A DNA stretch of 32,000 nt, from NCBI RefSeq assembly GCF_000400465.1, contig NW_008806277.1, positions 300,001 through 332,000 of the forward strand. Direction: 5' to 3'. The number at the start of each line of letters is the position of its first letter. Within the stretch, counting starts at the first letter, position 1. The notes beneath the pieces were generated by a model. That model made no database searches, was not told the DNA's origin, and saw nothing but the letters and a program-made list of their open reading frames with translations. A program made the position numbers and the translations under genes. Shown here piece by piece: positions 20,510 to 30,433 of this stretch. The stretch is from Wallemia ichthyophaga EXF-994 (taxonomy: Eukaryota > Fungi > Basidiomycota).

Positions 20510-22017
20510 CTAATGTATCTCACGCTCCAAACTCTCGAAATCCTCTTTGTGTATCTCTGCAGCCGACACCCTAACAGCGCTGCGAGGGGGGTTGGTTAGC
20601 CATCTGAGAGTGATACAATCGCTGCGCCACTCACCCTGCCAAGCTACCGCCGACCCAAGCATAGCAAGCCGGATTCCAAGCGGGAGCTTTGTTTGCTTTG
20701 CCACCTTTGCCACCTTTGCCTGCTTTGCCAGTTGGCTGGCTACCACGCGGCATCGGGTCGTTGATGACCTCGAACGACGTACTCAGACTGCTGAGATCAT
20801 TGAGATGAGTGGCTGTGCGTGTTGTGCGTTGCAACAGAGCGCGTGTCTCATCGCCAAGTCGCCGCCTGAAGCCGACTATGGACGCTGTACCCCCGACGAC
20901 TAGACAGCTCGCGCTCAGCTCTCTTCGCAGATCAATCGGTAGCGCTTGCATGCACTTCACCACGCACTCAGGTATGCTTGGCTCGTCTATGTCGCCACGA
21001 CTCTCAAGCAACTCCTCTACCGCCCTCGCTCTCACCCAGCCCGGTATAAATACCACTCCGCGCCCGTGGCTTGTTTGGATCTTGACTGCTATCTGATTAG
21101 CGTTTTTGTTATCATTATCATTAGCATTAGATGGTTTATCCGTCTCGCTATCAATTCCACTTTCATTTTCAGTTCCCGACTCAGCCAAGAGTGCCCGACA
21201 CTTAACATCCTCAATCCAGGCATCAGTGACTGCCTCGTGCGGCACATTGCCTGGTGGGGGCTGGCCGGCAGCGTTAGAGAGCTGGTTGGTGGAAAGGGCA
21301 GGGTAGTAAACACCATGAGCGAGCACGAGGTTACGCAAGTGGTTCGTTAGCCGCTTTCCCGCGAGTGGGGAAGAGACAGTGAGGGGTAGCATAGGTCTAG
21401 CCGCGTACACAGCCGACACGACAGTCTGCAGATAGCCCACATCCACGACCAGACCTGTCGTCCTCCCCGCCGCCATAAGCGCCGCGAGTGTGGCTGGTGT
21501 GAATGACACGGCTGTTACTTGCATGCTAGTGAAGAGTGCACCCATTATAGCCCGCCGCACTGGTGTGCTGAGCAAGTCATTCTCGAGTATTATAACCCGA
21601 CGTTGCTTGGGATCGACTTGAAGGTGGGTGTAGTAGATTTCGCGGAAGGCGTCGAGAAGCCCTAGCTCATTCTGCACCCCATTCAAATCCCAAAGCCCTC
21701 CTTCCACCTCTACCGTTATACTCTCGCGCGGACTGGCTTCCCCGCTGAAACCAACCTTTATCACCCTCGAGCCTGGGTCAATCACTATCTTTGATTCCGT
21801 CCCGTAGACTGAATGGCGGGTTGACTTGTTGCGTATATCCCCCGTCAGCGCGTACTTGGCTGTGGCTTTCACTCACGGTGAGATACGCGGGACTGTGCCC
21901 CATCGGCGTCGCTGGCTGCTTCAATGAAATTGGCGTAGAGAACCCGAACGGCAGCCCTGCACCACTGCCAGTCGATCTGTGTTTCACCGGCGTCAACGGC
22001 GGTCTGGGAGTGCTCAT
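20510..22017 (-). CDS. ARP10: Actin-related protein, Arp10/ACTR10 (dynactin)-like; 2 introns
   Basis: IVIDPGSRVIKVGFSGEASPR, TGLVVDVGYLQTVV, LPIDLRRELSASCLVVGGTASIVGFRRRL, AWVGGSLAG: a divergent actin fold with the basidiomycete Arp10-type N-terminal extension. Exact C-terminus uncertain. Confidence 0.78.
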
Positions 22018-22096
22018 GAGCGTAGATGGAAGACAAGTAGAAATGAAAATAAAGAAATGAAAATATAGATTACAATCGTTAGCAGCGTAATCAACG

Positions 22097-23792
22097 CTAA
22101 TGTCTACCCGTCAAAGCATCGTATTTGCTCAAGCACGAGTACCATTGGTAGTCTGTCTCAGGTTAGCGTGTTGAGGAATAGACTAAATACTCCACTCACC
22201 AATATTATCACTTGGATCACAATAGCAGCGTCCTAAAGAAGCGTCGCCTTGTGGGCAGTGTTGGAATGGCTGGTGGCGGTATCTGCAAATATTAAGACAC
22301 GCAGCTTCGCGTAAGCTAACTCACCCAAAATCTTCGAAAAAGTGAATTTGATCTGGTCTAGAGAATAAAGCAGCAGCTATAGAGTGCACCGGTGCATCCC
22401 CCCAGCGCTAAAAGCTAATGTCAGCTCATTTTCTCGCTGAGGAACACCACTGACCTCATAGTAGAAACCACCTGCTTGATCGAGGTAGTCGAAGAAGGCC
22501 TTATATGCAGGTGATCTCCACAGATTAAGATTGGCTATCTCAAAGTTGCTCCAGAAGTGGCAGCGGTTGTATGACTCTCCAGAGTCATCCGAGAGGAATT
22601 TCATAGCGTTATCCTTTGGAATGTGCTCGGGATGATCGCGGATAAAGTCTGGTGTGTGTCAGTTGAGTAGTTAAACAGCCACATTACACCCACCCTTCAC
22701 AGTCTGCCAAAGTGAAGGTATGGTTTCTTCATATTCCAAGAGAGAGACAGTGAAGCCTAAGAGTGCTGTGAGTGGAAATGAGCATGAGTCTTTGGATACC
22801 CACCGTAGTTAATATCGTTTTCTGCAACGAATTTGAATGCTATTGAGGTGATAAGAACTGGTTTAAACCACCACTCAGCAACTCACGGTCATAATCAACG
22901 TCGCAGTAGAGCTAAAACGTGTCAACAATGCTTAAAGAAACCTCTAAAGACCTGTACGAACACTAATATCTGGTCTGATAGTTTTCTGTAAGCAAAGGGC
23001 CATATTAAACACGCGTAACCCACTCAACGCGCCAATAATAATCAAAGTTATTAAGCAGAGGATGTCTCCAGAAGAAACCAGAGTTGAATCTGCACATGTT
23101 TCTATAAGGTACTGAATTAGCGTAAGGCACGACGCCAAGTTTCTCCATATTGTGTCTGTTCTCAGCAGCTAAAGTCTCGTTGATGAAGCTAGGCTGATTC
23201 CAGTGATCACTGGGGATAGTACCGTAGTGACAATGTGAACTAGCGAGTGCCTGTGTGTGACTGTGCTGTTTGTAAGCCACAAATGGGCACATTTACGCTG
23301 TAGTACTTTAACACACGCTTTGAATTCATCGTTGAAAGGTTTATCATTGAGGAATACCCATTCGTCTAAGAAGCACGTGAGCTGGACAGCCTCATCACCA
23401 CGCACTCCACTCACAGCCAAACTTGCTATTGAATCTGTCCTCGCTTTGGGTGGCGTTAGATGCCTTTTCGAAGCAGCTGTAAAAACGCACACCGCTCTCA
23501 TTGATGGCAGGAACGAATAGAGATCTGAATTCCTCGCTAAAACGACAAACGCAGCTTTTTGAAGATCTTTGGGATCCAAACCGTTGGTGTTGCTCAGTGG
23601 GGGGCGGTGATAAGAAGATTTGTGATCCTTGTTGTTTAATCGAAGTATTCTTGGTGTGTATTGCGTAGGCTGGGTGATGGACAGCAGCAGCACCAGCGAA
23701 ATCTAAAGCTGTTTCAATGAAATACACAGCGCATACGCTCCCCCTACCACTCCTGTAACTATCAGCAATCCCGCTCTCCAAAGGCGGTGCAT
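22097..23792 (-). CDS. Glycosyltransferase family 15 alpha-1,2-mannosyltransferase (Kre2/Mnt1/Ktr-like), type II membrane protein; many short introns
   Basis: N-terminal anchor MHRLWRAGLLIVTGV|ISLVLLLSI; KAAFVVLARNSDL; WVFLNDKPF; YRNMCRFNSGFFWRHPLLNNFDYYWRVE; YNRCHFWSNFEIANLNLWRS..Y..FFDYLDQAGGFYYE; RWGDAPVH; C-terminal Cys motif CPQG...CYCDP. Confidence 0.93.
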
Positions 23793-23862
23793 TATGATGA
23801 CGGTGGTTAAGGAACGTTGAATTTCCGCGTGAAAATATTCATCTATTTTTTTATTTTTTTAT

Positions 23863-26800
23863 TCATTTATTCACAGTTTGATTTATGAAACCATAAAGCG
23901 CATTCCCCTGATCTACTCCCAATATATCCCTCATATCTTTGTTTGTCATGTCCACCAAATGACGTATTGAGTTTACTTTGTTGGGTATATATTGGTAATT
24001 CTTCCCTGAAACTCCAGGCATGCTCTTCATCACTTCCACTGGCGTCATTGTCCAATTCTCTTCAATCAGATCCTCCAGTCCCGCTTCATCCGTACCCACA
24101 CCGCTCGCTTTCTCCACATCCGGCTCTTCCCTCTGTACCTTAAGATCGCTAAATATCTCTGCTGTCTGTCTCGGCGACGACGACCATATGATCCGAAGCC
24201 GAGGAAACGATATCGTCAGCATTACTAGTCTTGATTGGAATATCTCTGTGGGTGATGTACCCGTTATACGCGTCTTTTGAGCTGCAGCGGGGTGTAAATT
24301 CTTTTTAGATTCCGCTATTGTCTGTATTTATCGTCAGTCACGTGTCTGCCCGCACACCTCATTCCCTACCTCTAGTGAGAACGACCGGTTTTCCTCAAAT
24401 TCGATCAGTAGTATAGGTGTCTTATAGTATGTGCTCATGTATTCACACTGTGTGAACAGTCTACCCGATTGGAATGACTGGTTCAGATCTGTTAAACTCT
24501 TGCGCTCGACTACCATCGTAGGATCCAAGACATAGTCTCCAACTGTAAGCGTTGTAGGCTGCACGTCAAAGTTAGCTGAATGAAGTATACCTGGCAGCGA
24601 TGATCTGAACTCTCGAACATCAACCACTACCTGTGTGTGTGTAAGCAGTGGAAAGCTGGTGCATTATCTCTCGCCGCGCGCTTACTATTGGCTGCTTATC
24701 GCCGACTACTTGCTGGCCACCCGCTACACGCGCCGACAGAGCACTCAAGTAGTGGTCAGTCCCTGCCCGCGTCGACTCCTTCTCAAACAGAGGCAGGAGC
24801 ATTGTCTGCAGTTGAAAAATTTAGTTATCGAAAACCCACTCATTCCAAAACCCACAGATTTCTCGCGGATCAGTCTCTCAAAAGCATCCTTTTCTTTACG
24901 CAACCCAGATAAATACCTCTGCTCCTCCACCGACGCATTGTACAGCAAGAAGTACAGTCTAATGTCGATGTGAGGGTTGGATGATTTGTAAACCTAAACC
25001 AAGTAAGCTAAATTACCCCACTATACCCCTTCAACTCACCTCAACTCTCCTAACGAATGCCGGATCAGGATCATACATAACGATGAACTTTGGTTTGATT
25101 TCATCCAGGAGCGCATCGTCATCATCACCTCTATAAGCCCTGATGAGCAAAGTATCCTCCTCCTCCATCAATCCGTACTCGTCATTATCATCATGCGGCC
25201 ATATTTCATTAACATCTGTTGTAAGAAGCCATTGAGGGAGGTTATCGAAAAAATCGTAATCTTCATCGTCATCCTCGTCTGAGAGCTCTATCACTTCCTT
25301 ATCTTTGCCAGACCTCTGAGATTGACTGTGAGAATGTGTTAGATGAAGATAACGCTGAGAAATGCCAATTCACCTACAACTGTGCAATTTGCTTTGCTTC
25401 TGCTTCAAGCGGCGATTCAGCATTCGCGTCTAAATTGTTGTGTGTCTTGCGCGATGACGCGACGGATGCCATAACAGATCCTCCACGCACGCGTCGTCTG
25501 TTGTGACCATACGCGGTAGCTCCTTCATTTCTCCTAAATTGCTCCTTCCTCTGCAAGGCGGCAGAAGTGGCCTGAGAATTGCCTTGCTCAACTGCATTCT
25601 TGTCGCTAGACGATGAATTTTTGGACGGACTGCCAGCATTTGTGTTAGCAACATTGCTCTGCGCATTAAACTTCATATTGGTTGACATTATTCCCACATT
25701 TGCCTTGAATTTCTCGAGGTGATCTCTCAGCAACCTCTTCATCATCTTAGGTGCCTTTTTCTTTAAATGTGTTGAATGTGTTTTGCTATTATCATCTTCG
25801 CATTGACTGAGGTACTCTGTTAGCTGTATGACTGTCCTATTAGTCCCGCACATGATCAGAGTCATGTTATTCTCGCTCTGCGTTAGACCCTTGTTAAATT
25901 GTATGTTGTTGTCTATCTCTGCCAGTATCTCTGTCAACACTCCCCATTTCGGCTGTTCTTCTAGGACCGGAACTATGTTGGGCGGCAGCCACGACGCTCC
26001 ACCTCCACGACCGTTCTCGACCACTTTGTATGTCCGCTCTTTAGCTACACTGAAGATAGCATCGGCTGGGTCGAGATACAGCCAATGTGACGGAGTTTTG
26101 TTACCTGTACTCGAACTCTTATATTCATTCAGGTTGGATTGATAGATAGATTCGAGCAATTCTTCAAACTCGACACACGAATAGTTGAGCAGGAATGAGA
26201 GAAGATTGCGCAGTGTGCTAAGATCTTCAATCAGTCGCTTAGTTTTTGGTTTGATGAGGTGCCAGACGGGCAGTAGCTGCATCTTTATAATCTTGTCAAA
26301 ACTCCTGAACAGGGCGTTATCAACGGTGAAGTCATCAATATCGAGATTTGCGACATTGCCCTTCTTGATTTCCTGTATTGTAGCATCCATACACTGCAGG
26401 ATAGAGTGCTGTAAGTTGAGCATAGACTTTGTCAGCGATGGGTATAGTTCTACGACGTCAGCCTTGCGTTTGTCGAGATCTTCCTGGATAGTTTCGTGGA
26501 AACGCGGCCATATCCAGACCTTCCTGAGACCCAAAGAACGTAAAACAGTCTGCAGTGGCGAGACGCCGCTAGCAAAGAGCTCAGGGTTGTCTGAGAATGC
26601 CTTAAGAAAGCCCTCCTGGAAGTTGCAGGTGAGATAAGGAGTTTTTCACAGTGAAACCGCTCACCTTGTTATACTTGCGGTAAATTCTAGTAATGAAGGT
26701 CTCGAGCGAGGTTGGTGTGACTCTGGGAGGGTTGAGTGATAGTTCCACACAGTCCAGCATAATACCCACTGTTCTGCGTGTAAAATCACCATACCAGAAA

Positions 26801-27215
26801 TAAGATGTACGGGTATGGTTCCATTGAGCATGTCGACGACGAGGATTCGCGAGGTGACAGACACTAAGCCACCCTCCTTATACAACTCCTCCCTCTGCTT
26901 ACTGATCATATCAAAATTGACAACTCTGAGGCCTGGTTTGGCCACGCCCATCGTGCCGAGTAGATCGCCAATGCCGTCTTCCTCTGGTGAATCTGCGTTA
27001 AGCAAGAGAACCAATCTGCGTGGATCAGATTGGAGAGTGAGGAACGAGCACACGACACGCCTCAGTCCCAAGCCTCTAGCGAGGATCAACAGACCAGATT
27101 CGCAGGGATCGAGGTCCTGGGTGGAAGTGTCTGATGGATCTGGTGTTGCCGTGTCTGGTGTTCCTGGAATTAGCTGCCGCAGAATCTCCCGGTGAAATCT
27201 CAATGGGAGTTCCAT
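23863..27215 (-). CDS. RAD1: Structure-specific endonuclease XPF/ERCC4 (Rad1/Rad16); multi-exon
   Basis: N-terminal helicase-like module ([43 protein letters not shown]), [18 protein letters not shown], nuclease domain [11 protein letters not shown]...VGDYVL...[15 protein letters not shown], and C-terminal HhH2 (MKSMPGVS...). Start set at [12 protein letters not shown] (27213-27215). Confidence 0.95.
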
Positions 27216-27281
27216 CAATGATGACGTAACGAGACCAAGTCCAGTGGCGATAAGAAATTTATTTTTTGCGCGCACGCCACC

Positions 27282-28153
27282 ATGCCACCAAAATTCCCAA
27301 ATAAATCTGTGCACTATCTGCGGCTGAATGGGAATGCTGTGATGCAGTGTATCGTTTACTTGGACAATAAGCACCTCGAATGGTTCAGCCGCAGAATCCT
27401 CGAGTGCGTCATACGCGATATCCGGAAGCTGTACATGCCCAAGCTGTTGGCAGAGTTGCAAAGTGGCAAGGCTGAGCTAGACACGTACAGGAACCAGGGC
27501 TATCAATTTGCCTACTACTTCAAACCCACGCGCGACAAGCAGGGCGTTGTGAGCAAGGCCCACCAAATGACGTACATTCCTTCGTCTAAGCGTACAGTGC
27601 GACAGAAGCCTGAGCCAAGGCGTAATCAATCTGGTGAGACTGCAGAAGAGCTATTTGTCGATGACGACGGTGACGACTATGACGACGCTCAATTCGAAGA
27701 GAAACCAAAACCCAAGGTCAACACAAGCTACAAAATGAACAAACTCTTCTCAAAGACACTTTGCGTGAGTGAAGTGGCTAGCAATACAGCGCACAATATC
27801 TGACACGCGCTATCCAGATTATCATAGAACCATTCCCTTCGCTGGAAGAGTCGCATGTGGAGGGGACGATGCATCCACCCATTATGCCATCGCCATCGTC
27901 TCCTCCGCAGGGTGATATGCCAGGCGACACACATATACCAGACTCACTCGCAGATCCAGAAGATATCAAACCAGACATCAACACAATCAGCAACAGCAGT
28001 CCTCAACTCCCCTCTTCTACTCAGGCACTTTTCAACGACTTCAACTTGAACAATCCTGGCAGCTCCCTCTCCTTTTCGCAGATGGTCCAGAATGACCATT
28101 TCGGCGATAGGGTTGCTGAAATTGATGAGGAGAATGATGTAATGTATGAGTGA
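27282..28153 (+). CDS. Conserved-looking 272-aa protein, putative Saw1/SLX4IP-family XPF partner; exons 27282-27764, 27818-28153
   Basis: Two ORF pieces joined in frame by a 53-nt GTGAGT...CTGAC...CCAG intron, with good start context (GCCACCATG). The gene model is solid; the family call rests on recalled motif similarity (see findings). Confidence 0.75.
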
Positions 28154-28158
28154 TTCTA

Positions 28159-30433
28159 CTACTTCAGGCTTTGTCTCGACGAAGACTTGGCCAGCAGCTT
28201 CTCATGTCTCCGGCTAGTCTGGTTGAGGTCTTTGAGGAGCGCGTCGTGCCTCTTCTTGAGACTGTCCATACGCCAATTGAGTGTTTTTGGAGGGGGTGAC
28301 TTGATGGCGTTTTCTGGATGCGCTTTGTTCCCATCAGCTCTCTCAATCTTCTCTATATTCTCACTCTTCTCCATCTCCGGCAGATCGCCCAGCGCGCTGA
28401 ACCTGGACGATGATTTGGTCAACCTCGACGAGCTGGCCCTGCTAGAGAGGGTATGAGTTGGGCGAGAGGGAGCGTCTTTGAGTGTGTTGAGAGTATTCTG
28501 TGTAGAGTGTGTACCAGTAGAGCGGATATTAGGCGAGGATTTGTACTGTTTACTGAGCAACGGGCTGGCATTGGTAGTGGCGGTGGTAGTTGTTGTAGTG
28601 GTAGTAGTAGCACCACCATTAGCACTTACACCGCCCGCACTCAACCTAGACAAACTAATTTGCGAGTTCATCCTCCCCAGACTGGACCTACTCTCGACTC
28701 TCTTGAGCGGCGATTCGCGGTAGCCACCCGCATCAGCCTGGGTGTTGTCATCCACTGACGAAAGATCGCTGCTGTACGACACAGTGCGCGGTATACCTTC
28801 CACCATGTCTACCTTCTCCACATTCTCCACGCCCGCCAAATCGACTGTCCAGTCCAGTCGCTTTTTCGCTGAGAGTCCGACACATTGCTGCATCTCCAAG
28901 AAAGCCTGCTCTTCAGAAACATTCCGACTACGCGGGTTGGTTGATGTGTGGATGTTGTGGAAAGACAGTTTGAATGGTGTCTCTGGGGCGTGTAGGGGGG
29001 TGTCTCCCATACTTGCAAATGTGTTAGCATTTGCTTTGTTACTAGTGTGTGTGTCGCTGCTGCTGTGAGGGAATAAATTTTCAACTGTTGGTATATAATC
29101 AAAGTCCATCCATTCGTTAGATGGCGTGAATGTGAAAGGGCTGCTTGAACTCTTGTCGCGCGTGTCGTCCACACTCGCACTCCAACTCCCACTGACAGAG
29201 TTAGCAGCCTGGAAGAGAGCGCTGAAGTCGAAAGCGTTCTGAGGAGTCTTTTGGTGGTGGTCTTGGGGCGGCGTATTATTCCCCTCGCTTTCGCTCCCCT
29301 CCACCAGCTCATTTAGAGTGTGATCGTAGTATGTCGAGGGCACGGCGCGTTGCTCAACGCCATTCCAGTCGACGCCACGGAAAAAGACATGGTGCTTAAC
29401 CTGCTCCGTGCCACTATACCCCAATCGTTCCGTCTGTGGTTTGAATAGGCCCACGAGCAATGCGCGGAGATCGTCGTCTGAGCGACAGTGAATTTGGTCA
29501 TCACCCAGCGCATACTGATGCATCTTGATGCGGTTGTACGTCTCCCCGACGCTCTCTGCGAAAAAAGGTGTAATTCCGAATGCGAGTTCGTAGAGCACAA
29601 CGCCGAAGCTCCACCAGTCGCTCTCTGGGCCGTATAAACCTGGGGAATTATCGCTGTCTTTCTCCTTGTCCTTCTCGTTATCATTCACGTTATCATTCTC
29701 ATTCGCCTGCTCAGCTACCAGGTATTCTTCCGCTGCGAGAAGTATCTCTGGCGAGACATAGTCGGGCGTACCCACCAAGCCGACGCTGTCAATTTTGCGT
29801 GCGCGCTGCACACCAGCGTAATCGAGGAGCGCGGTAGCCGCTCCAAAGTCAGTAAGGAGAAGGTGATCGTCAGAGGCGATGAGCATGTTTTGCGGCTTGA
29901 GGTCGCGGTGCAGCCAGTGCACGTCATCATGTAGCCATTGTAGGGCGGCGAGAAGCTGAGCGCCGTAGTTGCGTATGGTCTGGGCAGGCAGCGTCTTCTC
30001 GTCTTGCATTTCGAGCAGCTCGAGGAGAGTGCCGTTGCTGGCGAGTGGGAGTTGCAGTAAGAGGTCCGTATCCGTTTGGAACGCAGAGATCATCGGCATA
30101 CAATGGCTGCTTTTGTGTGTCAACGCTAGCAGATGCACGCTGCGCTCGTTGTGTGGATTGCTGTACTGCAAGTATGCGTGAATAGCAGCGTTAATGAGAG
30201 AAATACTAACGCACACTAATATGTCTCCTGCTAAAACCTTTATTCATCACCTTCAACGCGTAAAATGACCCATTCAGTCGGCATTTGGCTAGCTGAATTG
30301 TGCCGAACTGCCCTTTGCTGATCAACTTGAGCGTCTTGAAATCTGTGCTGTTTATATGCAATTGATTATATTTTACATCATTTCCCTTAATATTTCTTAG
30401 CTCCTTGCGACGTTTCAACCATTCTTCCATCAT
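28159..30433 (-). CDS. AGC-group Ser/Thr kinase, DMPK/MRCK/ROCK-like catalytic domain with a long disordered tail; one 49-nt intron
   Basis: DFKTLKLISKGQFG, YALKVM, HRDLKPQN, LTDFG, VGTPDYVSPEIL, YGPESDWWSFGV, TPFFAESVGETYNRI, HVFFRGVDW. Confidence 0.88.

Follow-up and report, generated by a model that had tools for sequence, protein, structure and literature searches.

Within a 32,000-nucleotide stretch of the genome of the halophilic fungus Wallemia ichthyophaga EXF-994 (contig NW_008806277.1, positions 300,001 to 332,000; hereafter the window), the gene for the nuclease XPF and a plus-strand gene for a putative XPF adaptor lie head-to-head, and the question is whether the short spacer between them is a device that ties the expression of a nuclease to that of its recruiter. 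A sequence-only reading of the locus had proposed just that, in the form of a selected bidirectional promoter driven by a stress factor of the ATF/CREB basic leucine zipper (bZIP) type and enforcing stoichiometry between the two products. Our analysis favors a plainer answer, in which the two genes are probably an ordinary divergent pair in an ultra-compact basidiomycete genome, with one short nucleosome-free region in common. The positions on which the question turns were all verified in the sequence: the XPF start codon reads as 'cat' at 27213-27215 (minus strand), the neighboring plus-strand ATG stands at 27282-27284 in the context GCCACCATGC and opens the open reading frame (ORF) MPPKFPNKSVHYLRL, and 66 nucleotides (nt) separate the two. 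The locus is laid out as follows.

23863..27215, minus strand: gene assigned as the XPF/Rad1 ortholog, multi-exon coding sequence (CDS), start at 27213-27215, stop at 23863.
27216-27281: divergent intergenic spacer between both ATGs, 66 nt.
27282..27764, plus strand: first exon of the gene for the SLX4IP/Saw1-like candidate, encoding residues 1-161.
27765..27817, plus strand: intron of 53 nt (GTGAGT...CAG), compared with the 272-residue protein P0001 (junction ...KTLC/IIIEP...).
27818..28153, plus strand: exon 2 (residues 162-272 and stop), with the stop TGA at 28151-28153.

Judged by domain content and homology, the minus-strand gene is a true XPF/Rad1 ortholog, as had been called from the sequence: the ORF at 24334-24627 holds the ERCC4 nuclease domain (PF02732, E 4e-20) with an intact catalytic signature, GDY...ERKSLTD, of the form GDXnERKX3D, and exon 1 matches human XPF residues 30-138 (E 5.7e-16), with XPF chains as its sole matches. 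XPF is separated from Mus81 by an N-terminal helicase-like module derived from helicase superfamily 2 (SF2), and the exon 1 match shows that the minus-strand gene has such a module. The W. mellicola ortholog was called as a protein of 965 residues with ERCC4. Both start codons are well supported by homology. Upstream of 27213-27215, no further ATG lies in the XPF frame, and residue 40 of the product aligns with human XPF residue 30 in the same match; in about 130 fungal homologs of the plus-gene product, the initiator Met is followed after 5-8 residues by the conserved first strand, K/R-N-x-x-Y-L-R-I-S. The 66 nt between the ATGs imply one promoter region in common or transcription starting within the neighbor's CDS. 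The sequence-only reading had noted that two independent 5′ untranslated regions (UTRs) and promoters could not fit here, which is true, yet equally so for much of the genome.

Annotations of the locus differ in how they delimit XPF and its neighbors. In the W. ichthyophaga E3P-strain annotation, XPF, a GT15 glycosyltransferase and an actin-family gene are fused into a product of 1753 residues (L001:3229-9934, window about 20510-27215), and a protein kinase and a cullin into one of 1489 residues (L001:10878-15764, window 28159 onward). XPF, GT15, actin-family, kinase and cullin stand as separate genes in the W. mellicola annotation.

The 66-nt spacing is real, and it is not unusual for the genome. 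CDS-to-CDS gaps on the same W. ichthyophaga contig measure 5, 35, 43, 49, 56, 66, 94, 109, 226, 285 and 336 nt; their median, 66 nt, is the length of the XPF spacer itself, and the four local divergent pairs are separated by 285, 66, 56 (HisA/PPR) and 35 nt (cullin/AhpC). W. mellicola is much the same, its gaps having a median near 70 nt and its divergent pairs being separated by 28 and 38 nt. The W. ichthyophaga genome has been described as "unusually compact", with 9.6 Mb, 4884 genes and about three quarters coding sequence (PMC3849046). The tight head-to-head spacing is thus general here. A search for expression evidence by J056 locus tag in the supplementary data of the W. ichthyophaga genome and transcriptome study (PMC3849046) gave no match. 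Under the explanation that we prefer, the spacer would be, or be part of, a single nucleosome-free promoter region common to both genes, each of which would have a very short 5′ leader or else a transcription start site within the neighbor's CDS; the shared region would stem from genome-wide compaction and would not be a device selected for the XPF pair. At its other end, the plus-strand gene converges on a protein kinase gene, with the two stop codons (28151-28153 and 28159-28161) 5 nt apart, and the 3′ UTRs of these two genes would therefore have to overlap the opposite CDS.

Conservation of the adjacency leads to the same answer. The pair is present in four Wallemia species, namely W. ichthyophaga, W. 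mellicola, W. hederae and a fourth Wallemia represented by a sequencing run (L010), and the whole 20-kb block is collinear across these loci, every neighbor included; no pair-specific constraint can therefore be read from Wallemia synteny. Outside the genus, an ERCC4 gene was found within 8 kb of the plus-gene ortholog in none of seven fungal genomes (Malassezia sympodialis, Rhizophagus irregularis, Aspergillus brasiliensis, Umbelopsis and three Agaricomycetes), and the neighborhoods of the orthologs in these other fungi gave no hint of DNA repair. The three Agaricomycetes (L008, L011 and L012) share a different conserved neighborhood, comprising a convergent gene for an EF-G-like GTPase, ICMT/PEMT, RPL6, Pcf11 and a zinc alcohol dehydrogenase, and the adjacency to XPF is therefore a derived state of the Wallemia lineage. 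The Malassezia ortholog (L005) likewise has an ICMT gene nearby. Synteny across fungi, to which the sequence-only reading had looked for confirmation, thus tells largely against it: the pairing is restricted to one genus, within a collinear block. Under our preferred explanation, the plus-strand gene would have come to adjoin XPF by rearrangement in the Wallemia lineage, and the pair would since have been kept as part of the fully collinear block.

The spacer itself has not kept its length. It measures 66 nt in W. ichthyophaga and 133, 140 and 141 nt in the three other Wallemia, W. ichthyophaga having lost about half. For W. hederae, an 18-nt spacer follows from the annotation as it stands, and we rejected it, as a dubious intron adds an N-terminal extension of 11 residues (L004:3774-3896); the start conserved in the family is the ATG at L004:3896, which gives a spacer of 140 nt.

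What remains is the content of the spacer, in which an ATF/CREB-type site, an A/T tract and a GCGCGC had been pointed out and are all present. The ATF/CREB-type site is ATGACGTAA (27221-27229), in which the octamer TGACGTAA (27222-27229), similar to a cAMP response element, fits TGACGTMA; the A/T-rich AGAAATTTATTTTTT lies at about 27253-27267 and GCGCGC at 27268-27273. Together with the conserved positions described below, these elements form three features.

27219..27230, plus strand: TGATGACGTAAC block, which holds TGACGTAA at 27222-27229 and the conserved ATGATG at 27218-27223.
27245..27256, plus strand: GATA-type box TGGCGATAAGAA, the second phylogenetic footprint, with 10-mers common to three species.
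27257..27273, plus strand: A/T tract ATTTATTTTTT, then GCGCGC, close on the 5′ side of the plus-gene ATG.

The octamer does not carry the weight that was placed on it. The 32-kb window has a single copy of TGACGTAA where 0.77 would be expected, and at least one copy was found in 58 of 100 shuffles, so that the motif is not significant alone. The orthologous block reads TGATGATGTAAC in L010 and GATGATGTCAC in W. mellicola and W. hederae, and the site orthologous to the octamer reads TGATGTAA in L010 and TGATGTCA in the other two. An ACGT core is found in W. ichthyophaga only, whereas the other three Wallemia carry TGATGT there; the canonical ATF/CREB site is therefore specific to W. ichthyophaga, and TGACGTAA is a T-to-C change in that species. 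The bZIP site of the sequence-only reading is hence present as an octamer, but its frequency is that of chance and its core is not conserved in three of the four species. The other Wallemia species, with their longer spacers, have no conserved counterpart of the A/T tract and GCGCGC, and we infer only that the tract could be a poly(dA:dT) nucleosome-excluding element.

Two short footprints are nevertheless conserved. Among 6-mers, ATGATG alone recurs in each of the four spacers (0.01 expected), and it lies 1-6 nt from the XPF ATG; it belongs to the first footprint, ATGATG(N)GTMAC, which adjoins that start codon. The second, a GCGATAAG box about 20 nt beyond the first, contains the 10-mers GCGATAAGAA and TGGCGATAAG, which are common to W. 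ichthyophaga, L010 and W. hederae and whose length was reached in 2 and 7 of 300 shuffles; the W. mellicola spacer reads TGATAGC at the matching offset. Both footprints may be cis-elements. The ATGATG block occupies 27218-27229 in the window and L010:5862-5870, L003:9870-9896 and L004:3758-3784 at the other loci.

The first footprint admits a reading that involves no transcription factor. As a translational or 5′-leader element, ATGATG would open an upstream ORF on the plus strand or, on the minus strand, stand as CATCAT 5′ of the XPF ATG. Its uniqueness among the 6-mers of the four spacers and its constant place beside the XPF start fit this idea, as does the short in-frame stop that comes after it in every species, the plus-strand ORF being MMT* in W. 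ichthyophaga, MM* in L010 and 8-9 codons long in W. mellicola and W. hederae. For the plus-strand gene, however, such an upstream ORF would require transcription to start inside the XPF CDS, and the conserved 8-mer TGAYGTMA is equally compatible with a bZIP half-site; we hold a leader element to be possible but rather unlikely.

A selected bidirectional promoter, at which an ATF/CREB-type bZIP stress factor would match the expression of the XPF nuclease to that of its recruiter, could draw on the head-to-head arrangement with 66 nt between ATGs, on the SLX4IP-like predicted fold of XPF's neighbor (see below), on the fact that the sole TGACGTAA copy in 32 kb falls in the spacer, on the TGAYGTMAC-related block and GATAAG box conserved in position in four Wallemia species, and on the rarity with which two true partners become adjacent by chance. 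Set against these are a spacing equal to the local median, an adjacency that is genus-restricted in a collinear block and absent from seven of seven other fungi, the absence from three of four species of the ACGT core that ATF/CREB factors need, and a motif count not above chance, and on this evidence such a promoter is improbable. Divergent orientation with a short shared upstream region is an expectation of a selected pair that the locus bears out; spacing above background and conservation beyond collinearity were not found, and in both spacing and synteny the outcome is the one that the sequence-only reading had itself named as telling against it. Classic fungal bidirectional promoters, such as those of histone H2A-H2B and of GAL1-GAL10 of budding yeast, are widely conserved, and co-regulation of their genes has been shown. 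The Wallemia locus is like them in its head-to-head genes, single short intergenic region, and A/T tract with candidate factor sites. It is unlike them in that the XPF pair is limited to one genus and has the spacing that is the genomic norm.

The identity of the plus-strand gene is a separate matter. Its two exons encode a product of 272 residues that is 99% identical to 'hypothetical protein E3P81_02278' and corresponds to J056_003418 in EXF-994. At residue 178 (27869-27871), the window reads HVEGTMHPP and P0001 HVEGAMHPP, and this single amino-acid difference suggests that the window and the representative protein come from different W. ichthyophaga strains. A word-based search with the product returned Wallemia homologs only, whereas a full hidden Markov model (HMM) search returned 133 relatives; in a further profile search, these were named as 'hypothetical proteins' from Agaricomycetes, Malassezia, Glomeromycota, Umbelopsis, Jimgerdemannia, Protomyces and Eurotiales. 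The Wallemia protein had no Pfam match at E<=1. By these profile relationships, the plus-strand gene is a member of an unnamed pan-fungal orphan family without a Pfam domain. Two blocks are conserved among its members, one an N-terminal domain some 100 residues long and the other KPKPxLxLxYxGFxIxxxxLCVVVEP, with a disordered linker of very variable length between them. The Arg of strand b1 (R14, in YLRIS) is near-invariant and recalls what we take to be R19 of Saw1. After a long disordered region comes a C-terminal tail (about 225-272) with F-S-Q-hydrophobic, an acidic run and a Y/F-E/D end, which is conserved from Wallemia to Agaricomycetes and Glomeromycota; this tail could serve as a second motif for interaction.

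The family appears to carry the beta-grasp fold of SLX4IP, MAJIN and Saw1. An AlphaFold2 model resting on a 90-sequence alignment had predicted local distance difference test (pLDDT) values above 90 over residues 1-100 and 140-170 (the three Wallemia sequences alone gave an unusable model, with a pLDDT of 39), and its predicted element order is b1-b2-long helix-b3-b4-b5, linker, b6-b7, with a b2-helix-b3 core like that of solved SLX4IP. In a Foldseek comparison with the PDB, high-probability matches were limited to MAJIN (6gny; probability 0.99, template modeling (TM) score 0.56) and human SLX4IP in the XPF-ERCC1-SLX4-SLX4IP complex (9qed_C; probability 0.98, TM 0.61 over the full 121-residue chain, E 0.09), with E-values of 0.03-0.09 for these matches. 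SLX4IP and MAJIN are published structural homologs (PMC12804970), and yeast Saw1 shares the beta-grasp topology and binds the same Rad1 surface (PMC13578500, 2026).

Sequence comparison agrees with the fold in part. An SLX4IP profile was made from the human sequence, which was first checked against the PDB chain, and homologs then collected; aligned to it with hhalign, the family gave a P of about 0.001-0.002 and a probability of 10-22%. The alignment is collinear, joining the W-F/M-S helix start, the long helix and the G-Y/F-Q-F...Y-F strands, and its score of 24.9 compares with 10.3 for the reversed profile and was reached by none of 150 column and 2 of 150 block permutations. The Pfam Saw1 family (PF11561) was the most recurrent sub-threshold match, found in 5 of 90 members on the C-terminal block with a best E of 0.042. 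Neither PF15744 (SLX4IP) nor PF11561 matched the Wallemia protein or its 90 homologs above the gathering score, none of ten compact ascomycete, glomeromycete, Umbelopsis and Malassezia members had a Saw1 or SLX4IP Pfam match, and profile searches of PDB sequences did not find SLX4IP, their chance matches being bS21, centrin and Msh2 at E>0.05. The Saw1/SLX4IP-like label that the gene had been given is plausible from the predicted fold (Foldseek 0.98) and from an hhalign score that is weak but beats its controls, and falls short at the Pfam thresholds.

Taking fold and alignment together, we lean toward the plus-strand product being a member of the SLX4IP/Saw1/MAJIN beta-grasp group and an adaptor of the SLX4IP/Saw1 type, and such membership would make it a plausible XPF-binding adaptor. 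The rival is a generic MAJIN-like beta-grasp protein that serves some other protein-protein interaction and is unconnected with XPF, its adjacency being coincidental. This is the less likely of the two, though a serious contender: no SLX4IP or Saw1 Pfam match exceeds threshold, the PDB sequence profile searches are without SLX4IP, Foldseek E-values reach just 0.03-0.09 with MAJIN scoring equal to SLX4IP, and the neighborhoods in other fungi hold no sign of repair genes. It is countered by the fact that the two best structural matches are the published SLX4IP/MAJIN subgroup (PMC12804970), by the collinear alignment that outscores reversed and permuted controls, by the recurrence of Saw1 as the commonest weak Pfam match, and by the binding of XPF/Rad1 by known fungal and animal members of the SLX4IP/Saw1 group (PMC13578500, PMC4159138).

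Comparison with the three known proteins shows where the family would stand. It is like the N-terminal beta-grasp domain of human SLX4IP (PDB 9QED; PMC12804970) in its predicted fold and strand order (b1-b2-long helix-b3...), in collinear motifs (W-F-S at the helix start and G-Y-x-F...Y-F in b3-b4) and in the N-terminal position of the domain ahead of a disordered tail. It is unlike SLX4IP in that sequence similarity lies below family thresholds, with no PF15744 match; in the fungal proteins, the last b-hairpin is also preceded by an inserted linker of 40-250 residues that is disordered and often acidic, and the C-terminal tail is acidic and conserved. Saw1 (S. cerevisiae Saw1; S. pombe SPBC409.16c) is the recruiter of Rad1-Rad10 or Rad16-Swi10; like the family, it is fungal, has a beta-grasp core and contains a disordered insert before its last strands, and it binds the Rad1 surface that corresponds to the SLX4IP surface on XPF (PMC13578500). 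PF11561, the most recurrent weak match, falls on the C-terminal strands, but every such match is below the gathering score (best E 0.042), ascomycete members have none, and no counterpart of the two long 'arms' of Saw1 was recognized. MAJIN, whose N-terminal domain (PDB 6GNY) is the best Foldseek match, belongs to the same beta-grasp subgroup, in which partners are bound by strand addition. Unlike the family, it is a metazoan meiotic telomere and nuclear-envelope protein with a transmembrane anchor, and the fungal proteins bear no other resemblance to it.

Several observations weigh against an ordinary divergent pair whose plus-strand member is an adaptor. If the plus-strand gene does encode an XPF adaptor, the adjacency of two partners by chance is a priori rare (about 2/4884), and so the pairing may not be just an accident of rearrangement; by our estimate, chance alone would give a genome a few adjacent interacting pairs. 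The two short footprints, in spacers that are otherwise saturated, fit functional shared cis-elements. On the side of the protein, the SLX4IP/Saw1 assignment lies below sequence-family thresholds, with a low HHalign probability and PDB profile searches that returned no relevant match. One could join the first of these points into a history in which a rearrangement in the Wallemia lineage set XPF beside a hitherto unrecognized fungal SLX4IP/Saw1 ortholog and the pair was then held by a miniature co-regulating bidirectional promoter (ATGATG/TGAYGTMAC plus GATAAG), which we regard as doubtful. An ordinary divergent pair, brought together in the Wallemia lineage and kept within a collinear block of a compact genome, is still the probable explanation.

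The promoter claim is best taken as a caution: in a genome about three quarters of which is coding, a head-to-head gap of 66 nt is not informative about the pair. Should such a co-regulated adaptor pair exist, gene order would have hinted at the function of a pan-fungal orphan family. The useful by-product is the plus-gene family itself, which extends across Basidiomycota, Mucoromycota, Glomeromycota and some Ascomycota, in all of which its members are 'hypothetical' and without a Pfam domain. If the family binds XPF, it would close the gap that separates yeast Saw1 from animal SLX4IP, and most fungi would gain a candidate XPF-ERCC1 recruiter for recombination and cross-link repair.

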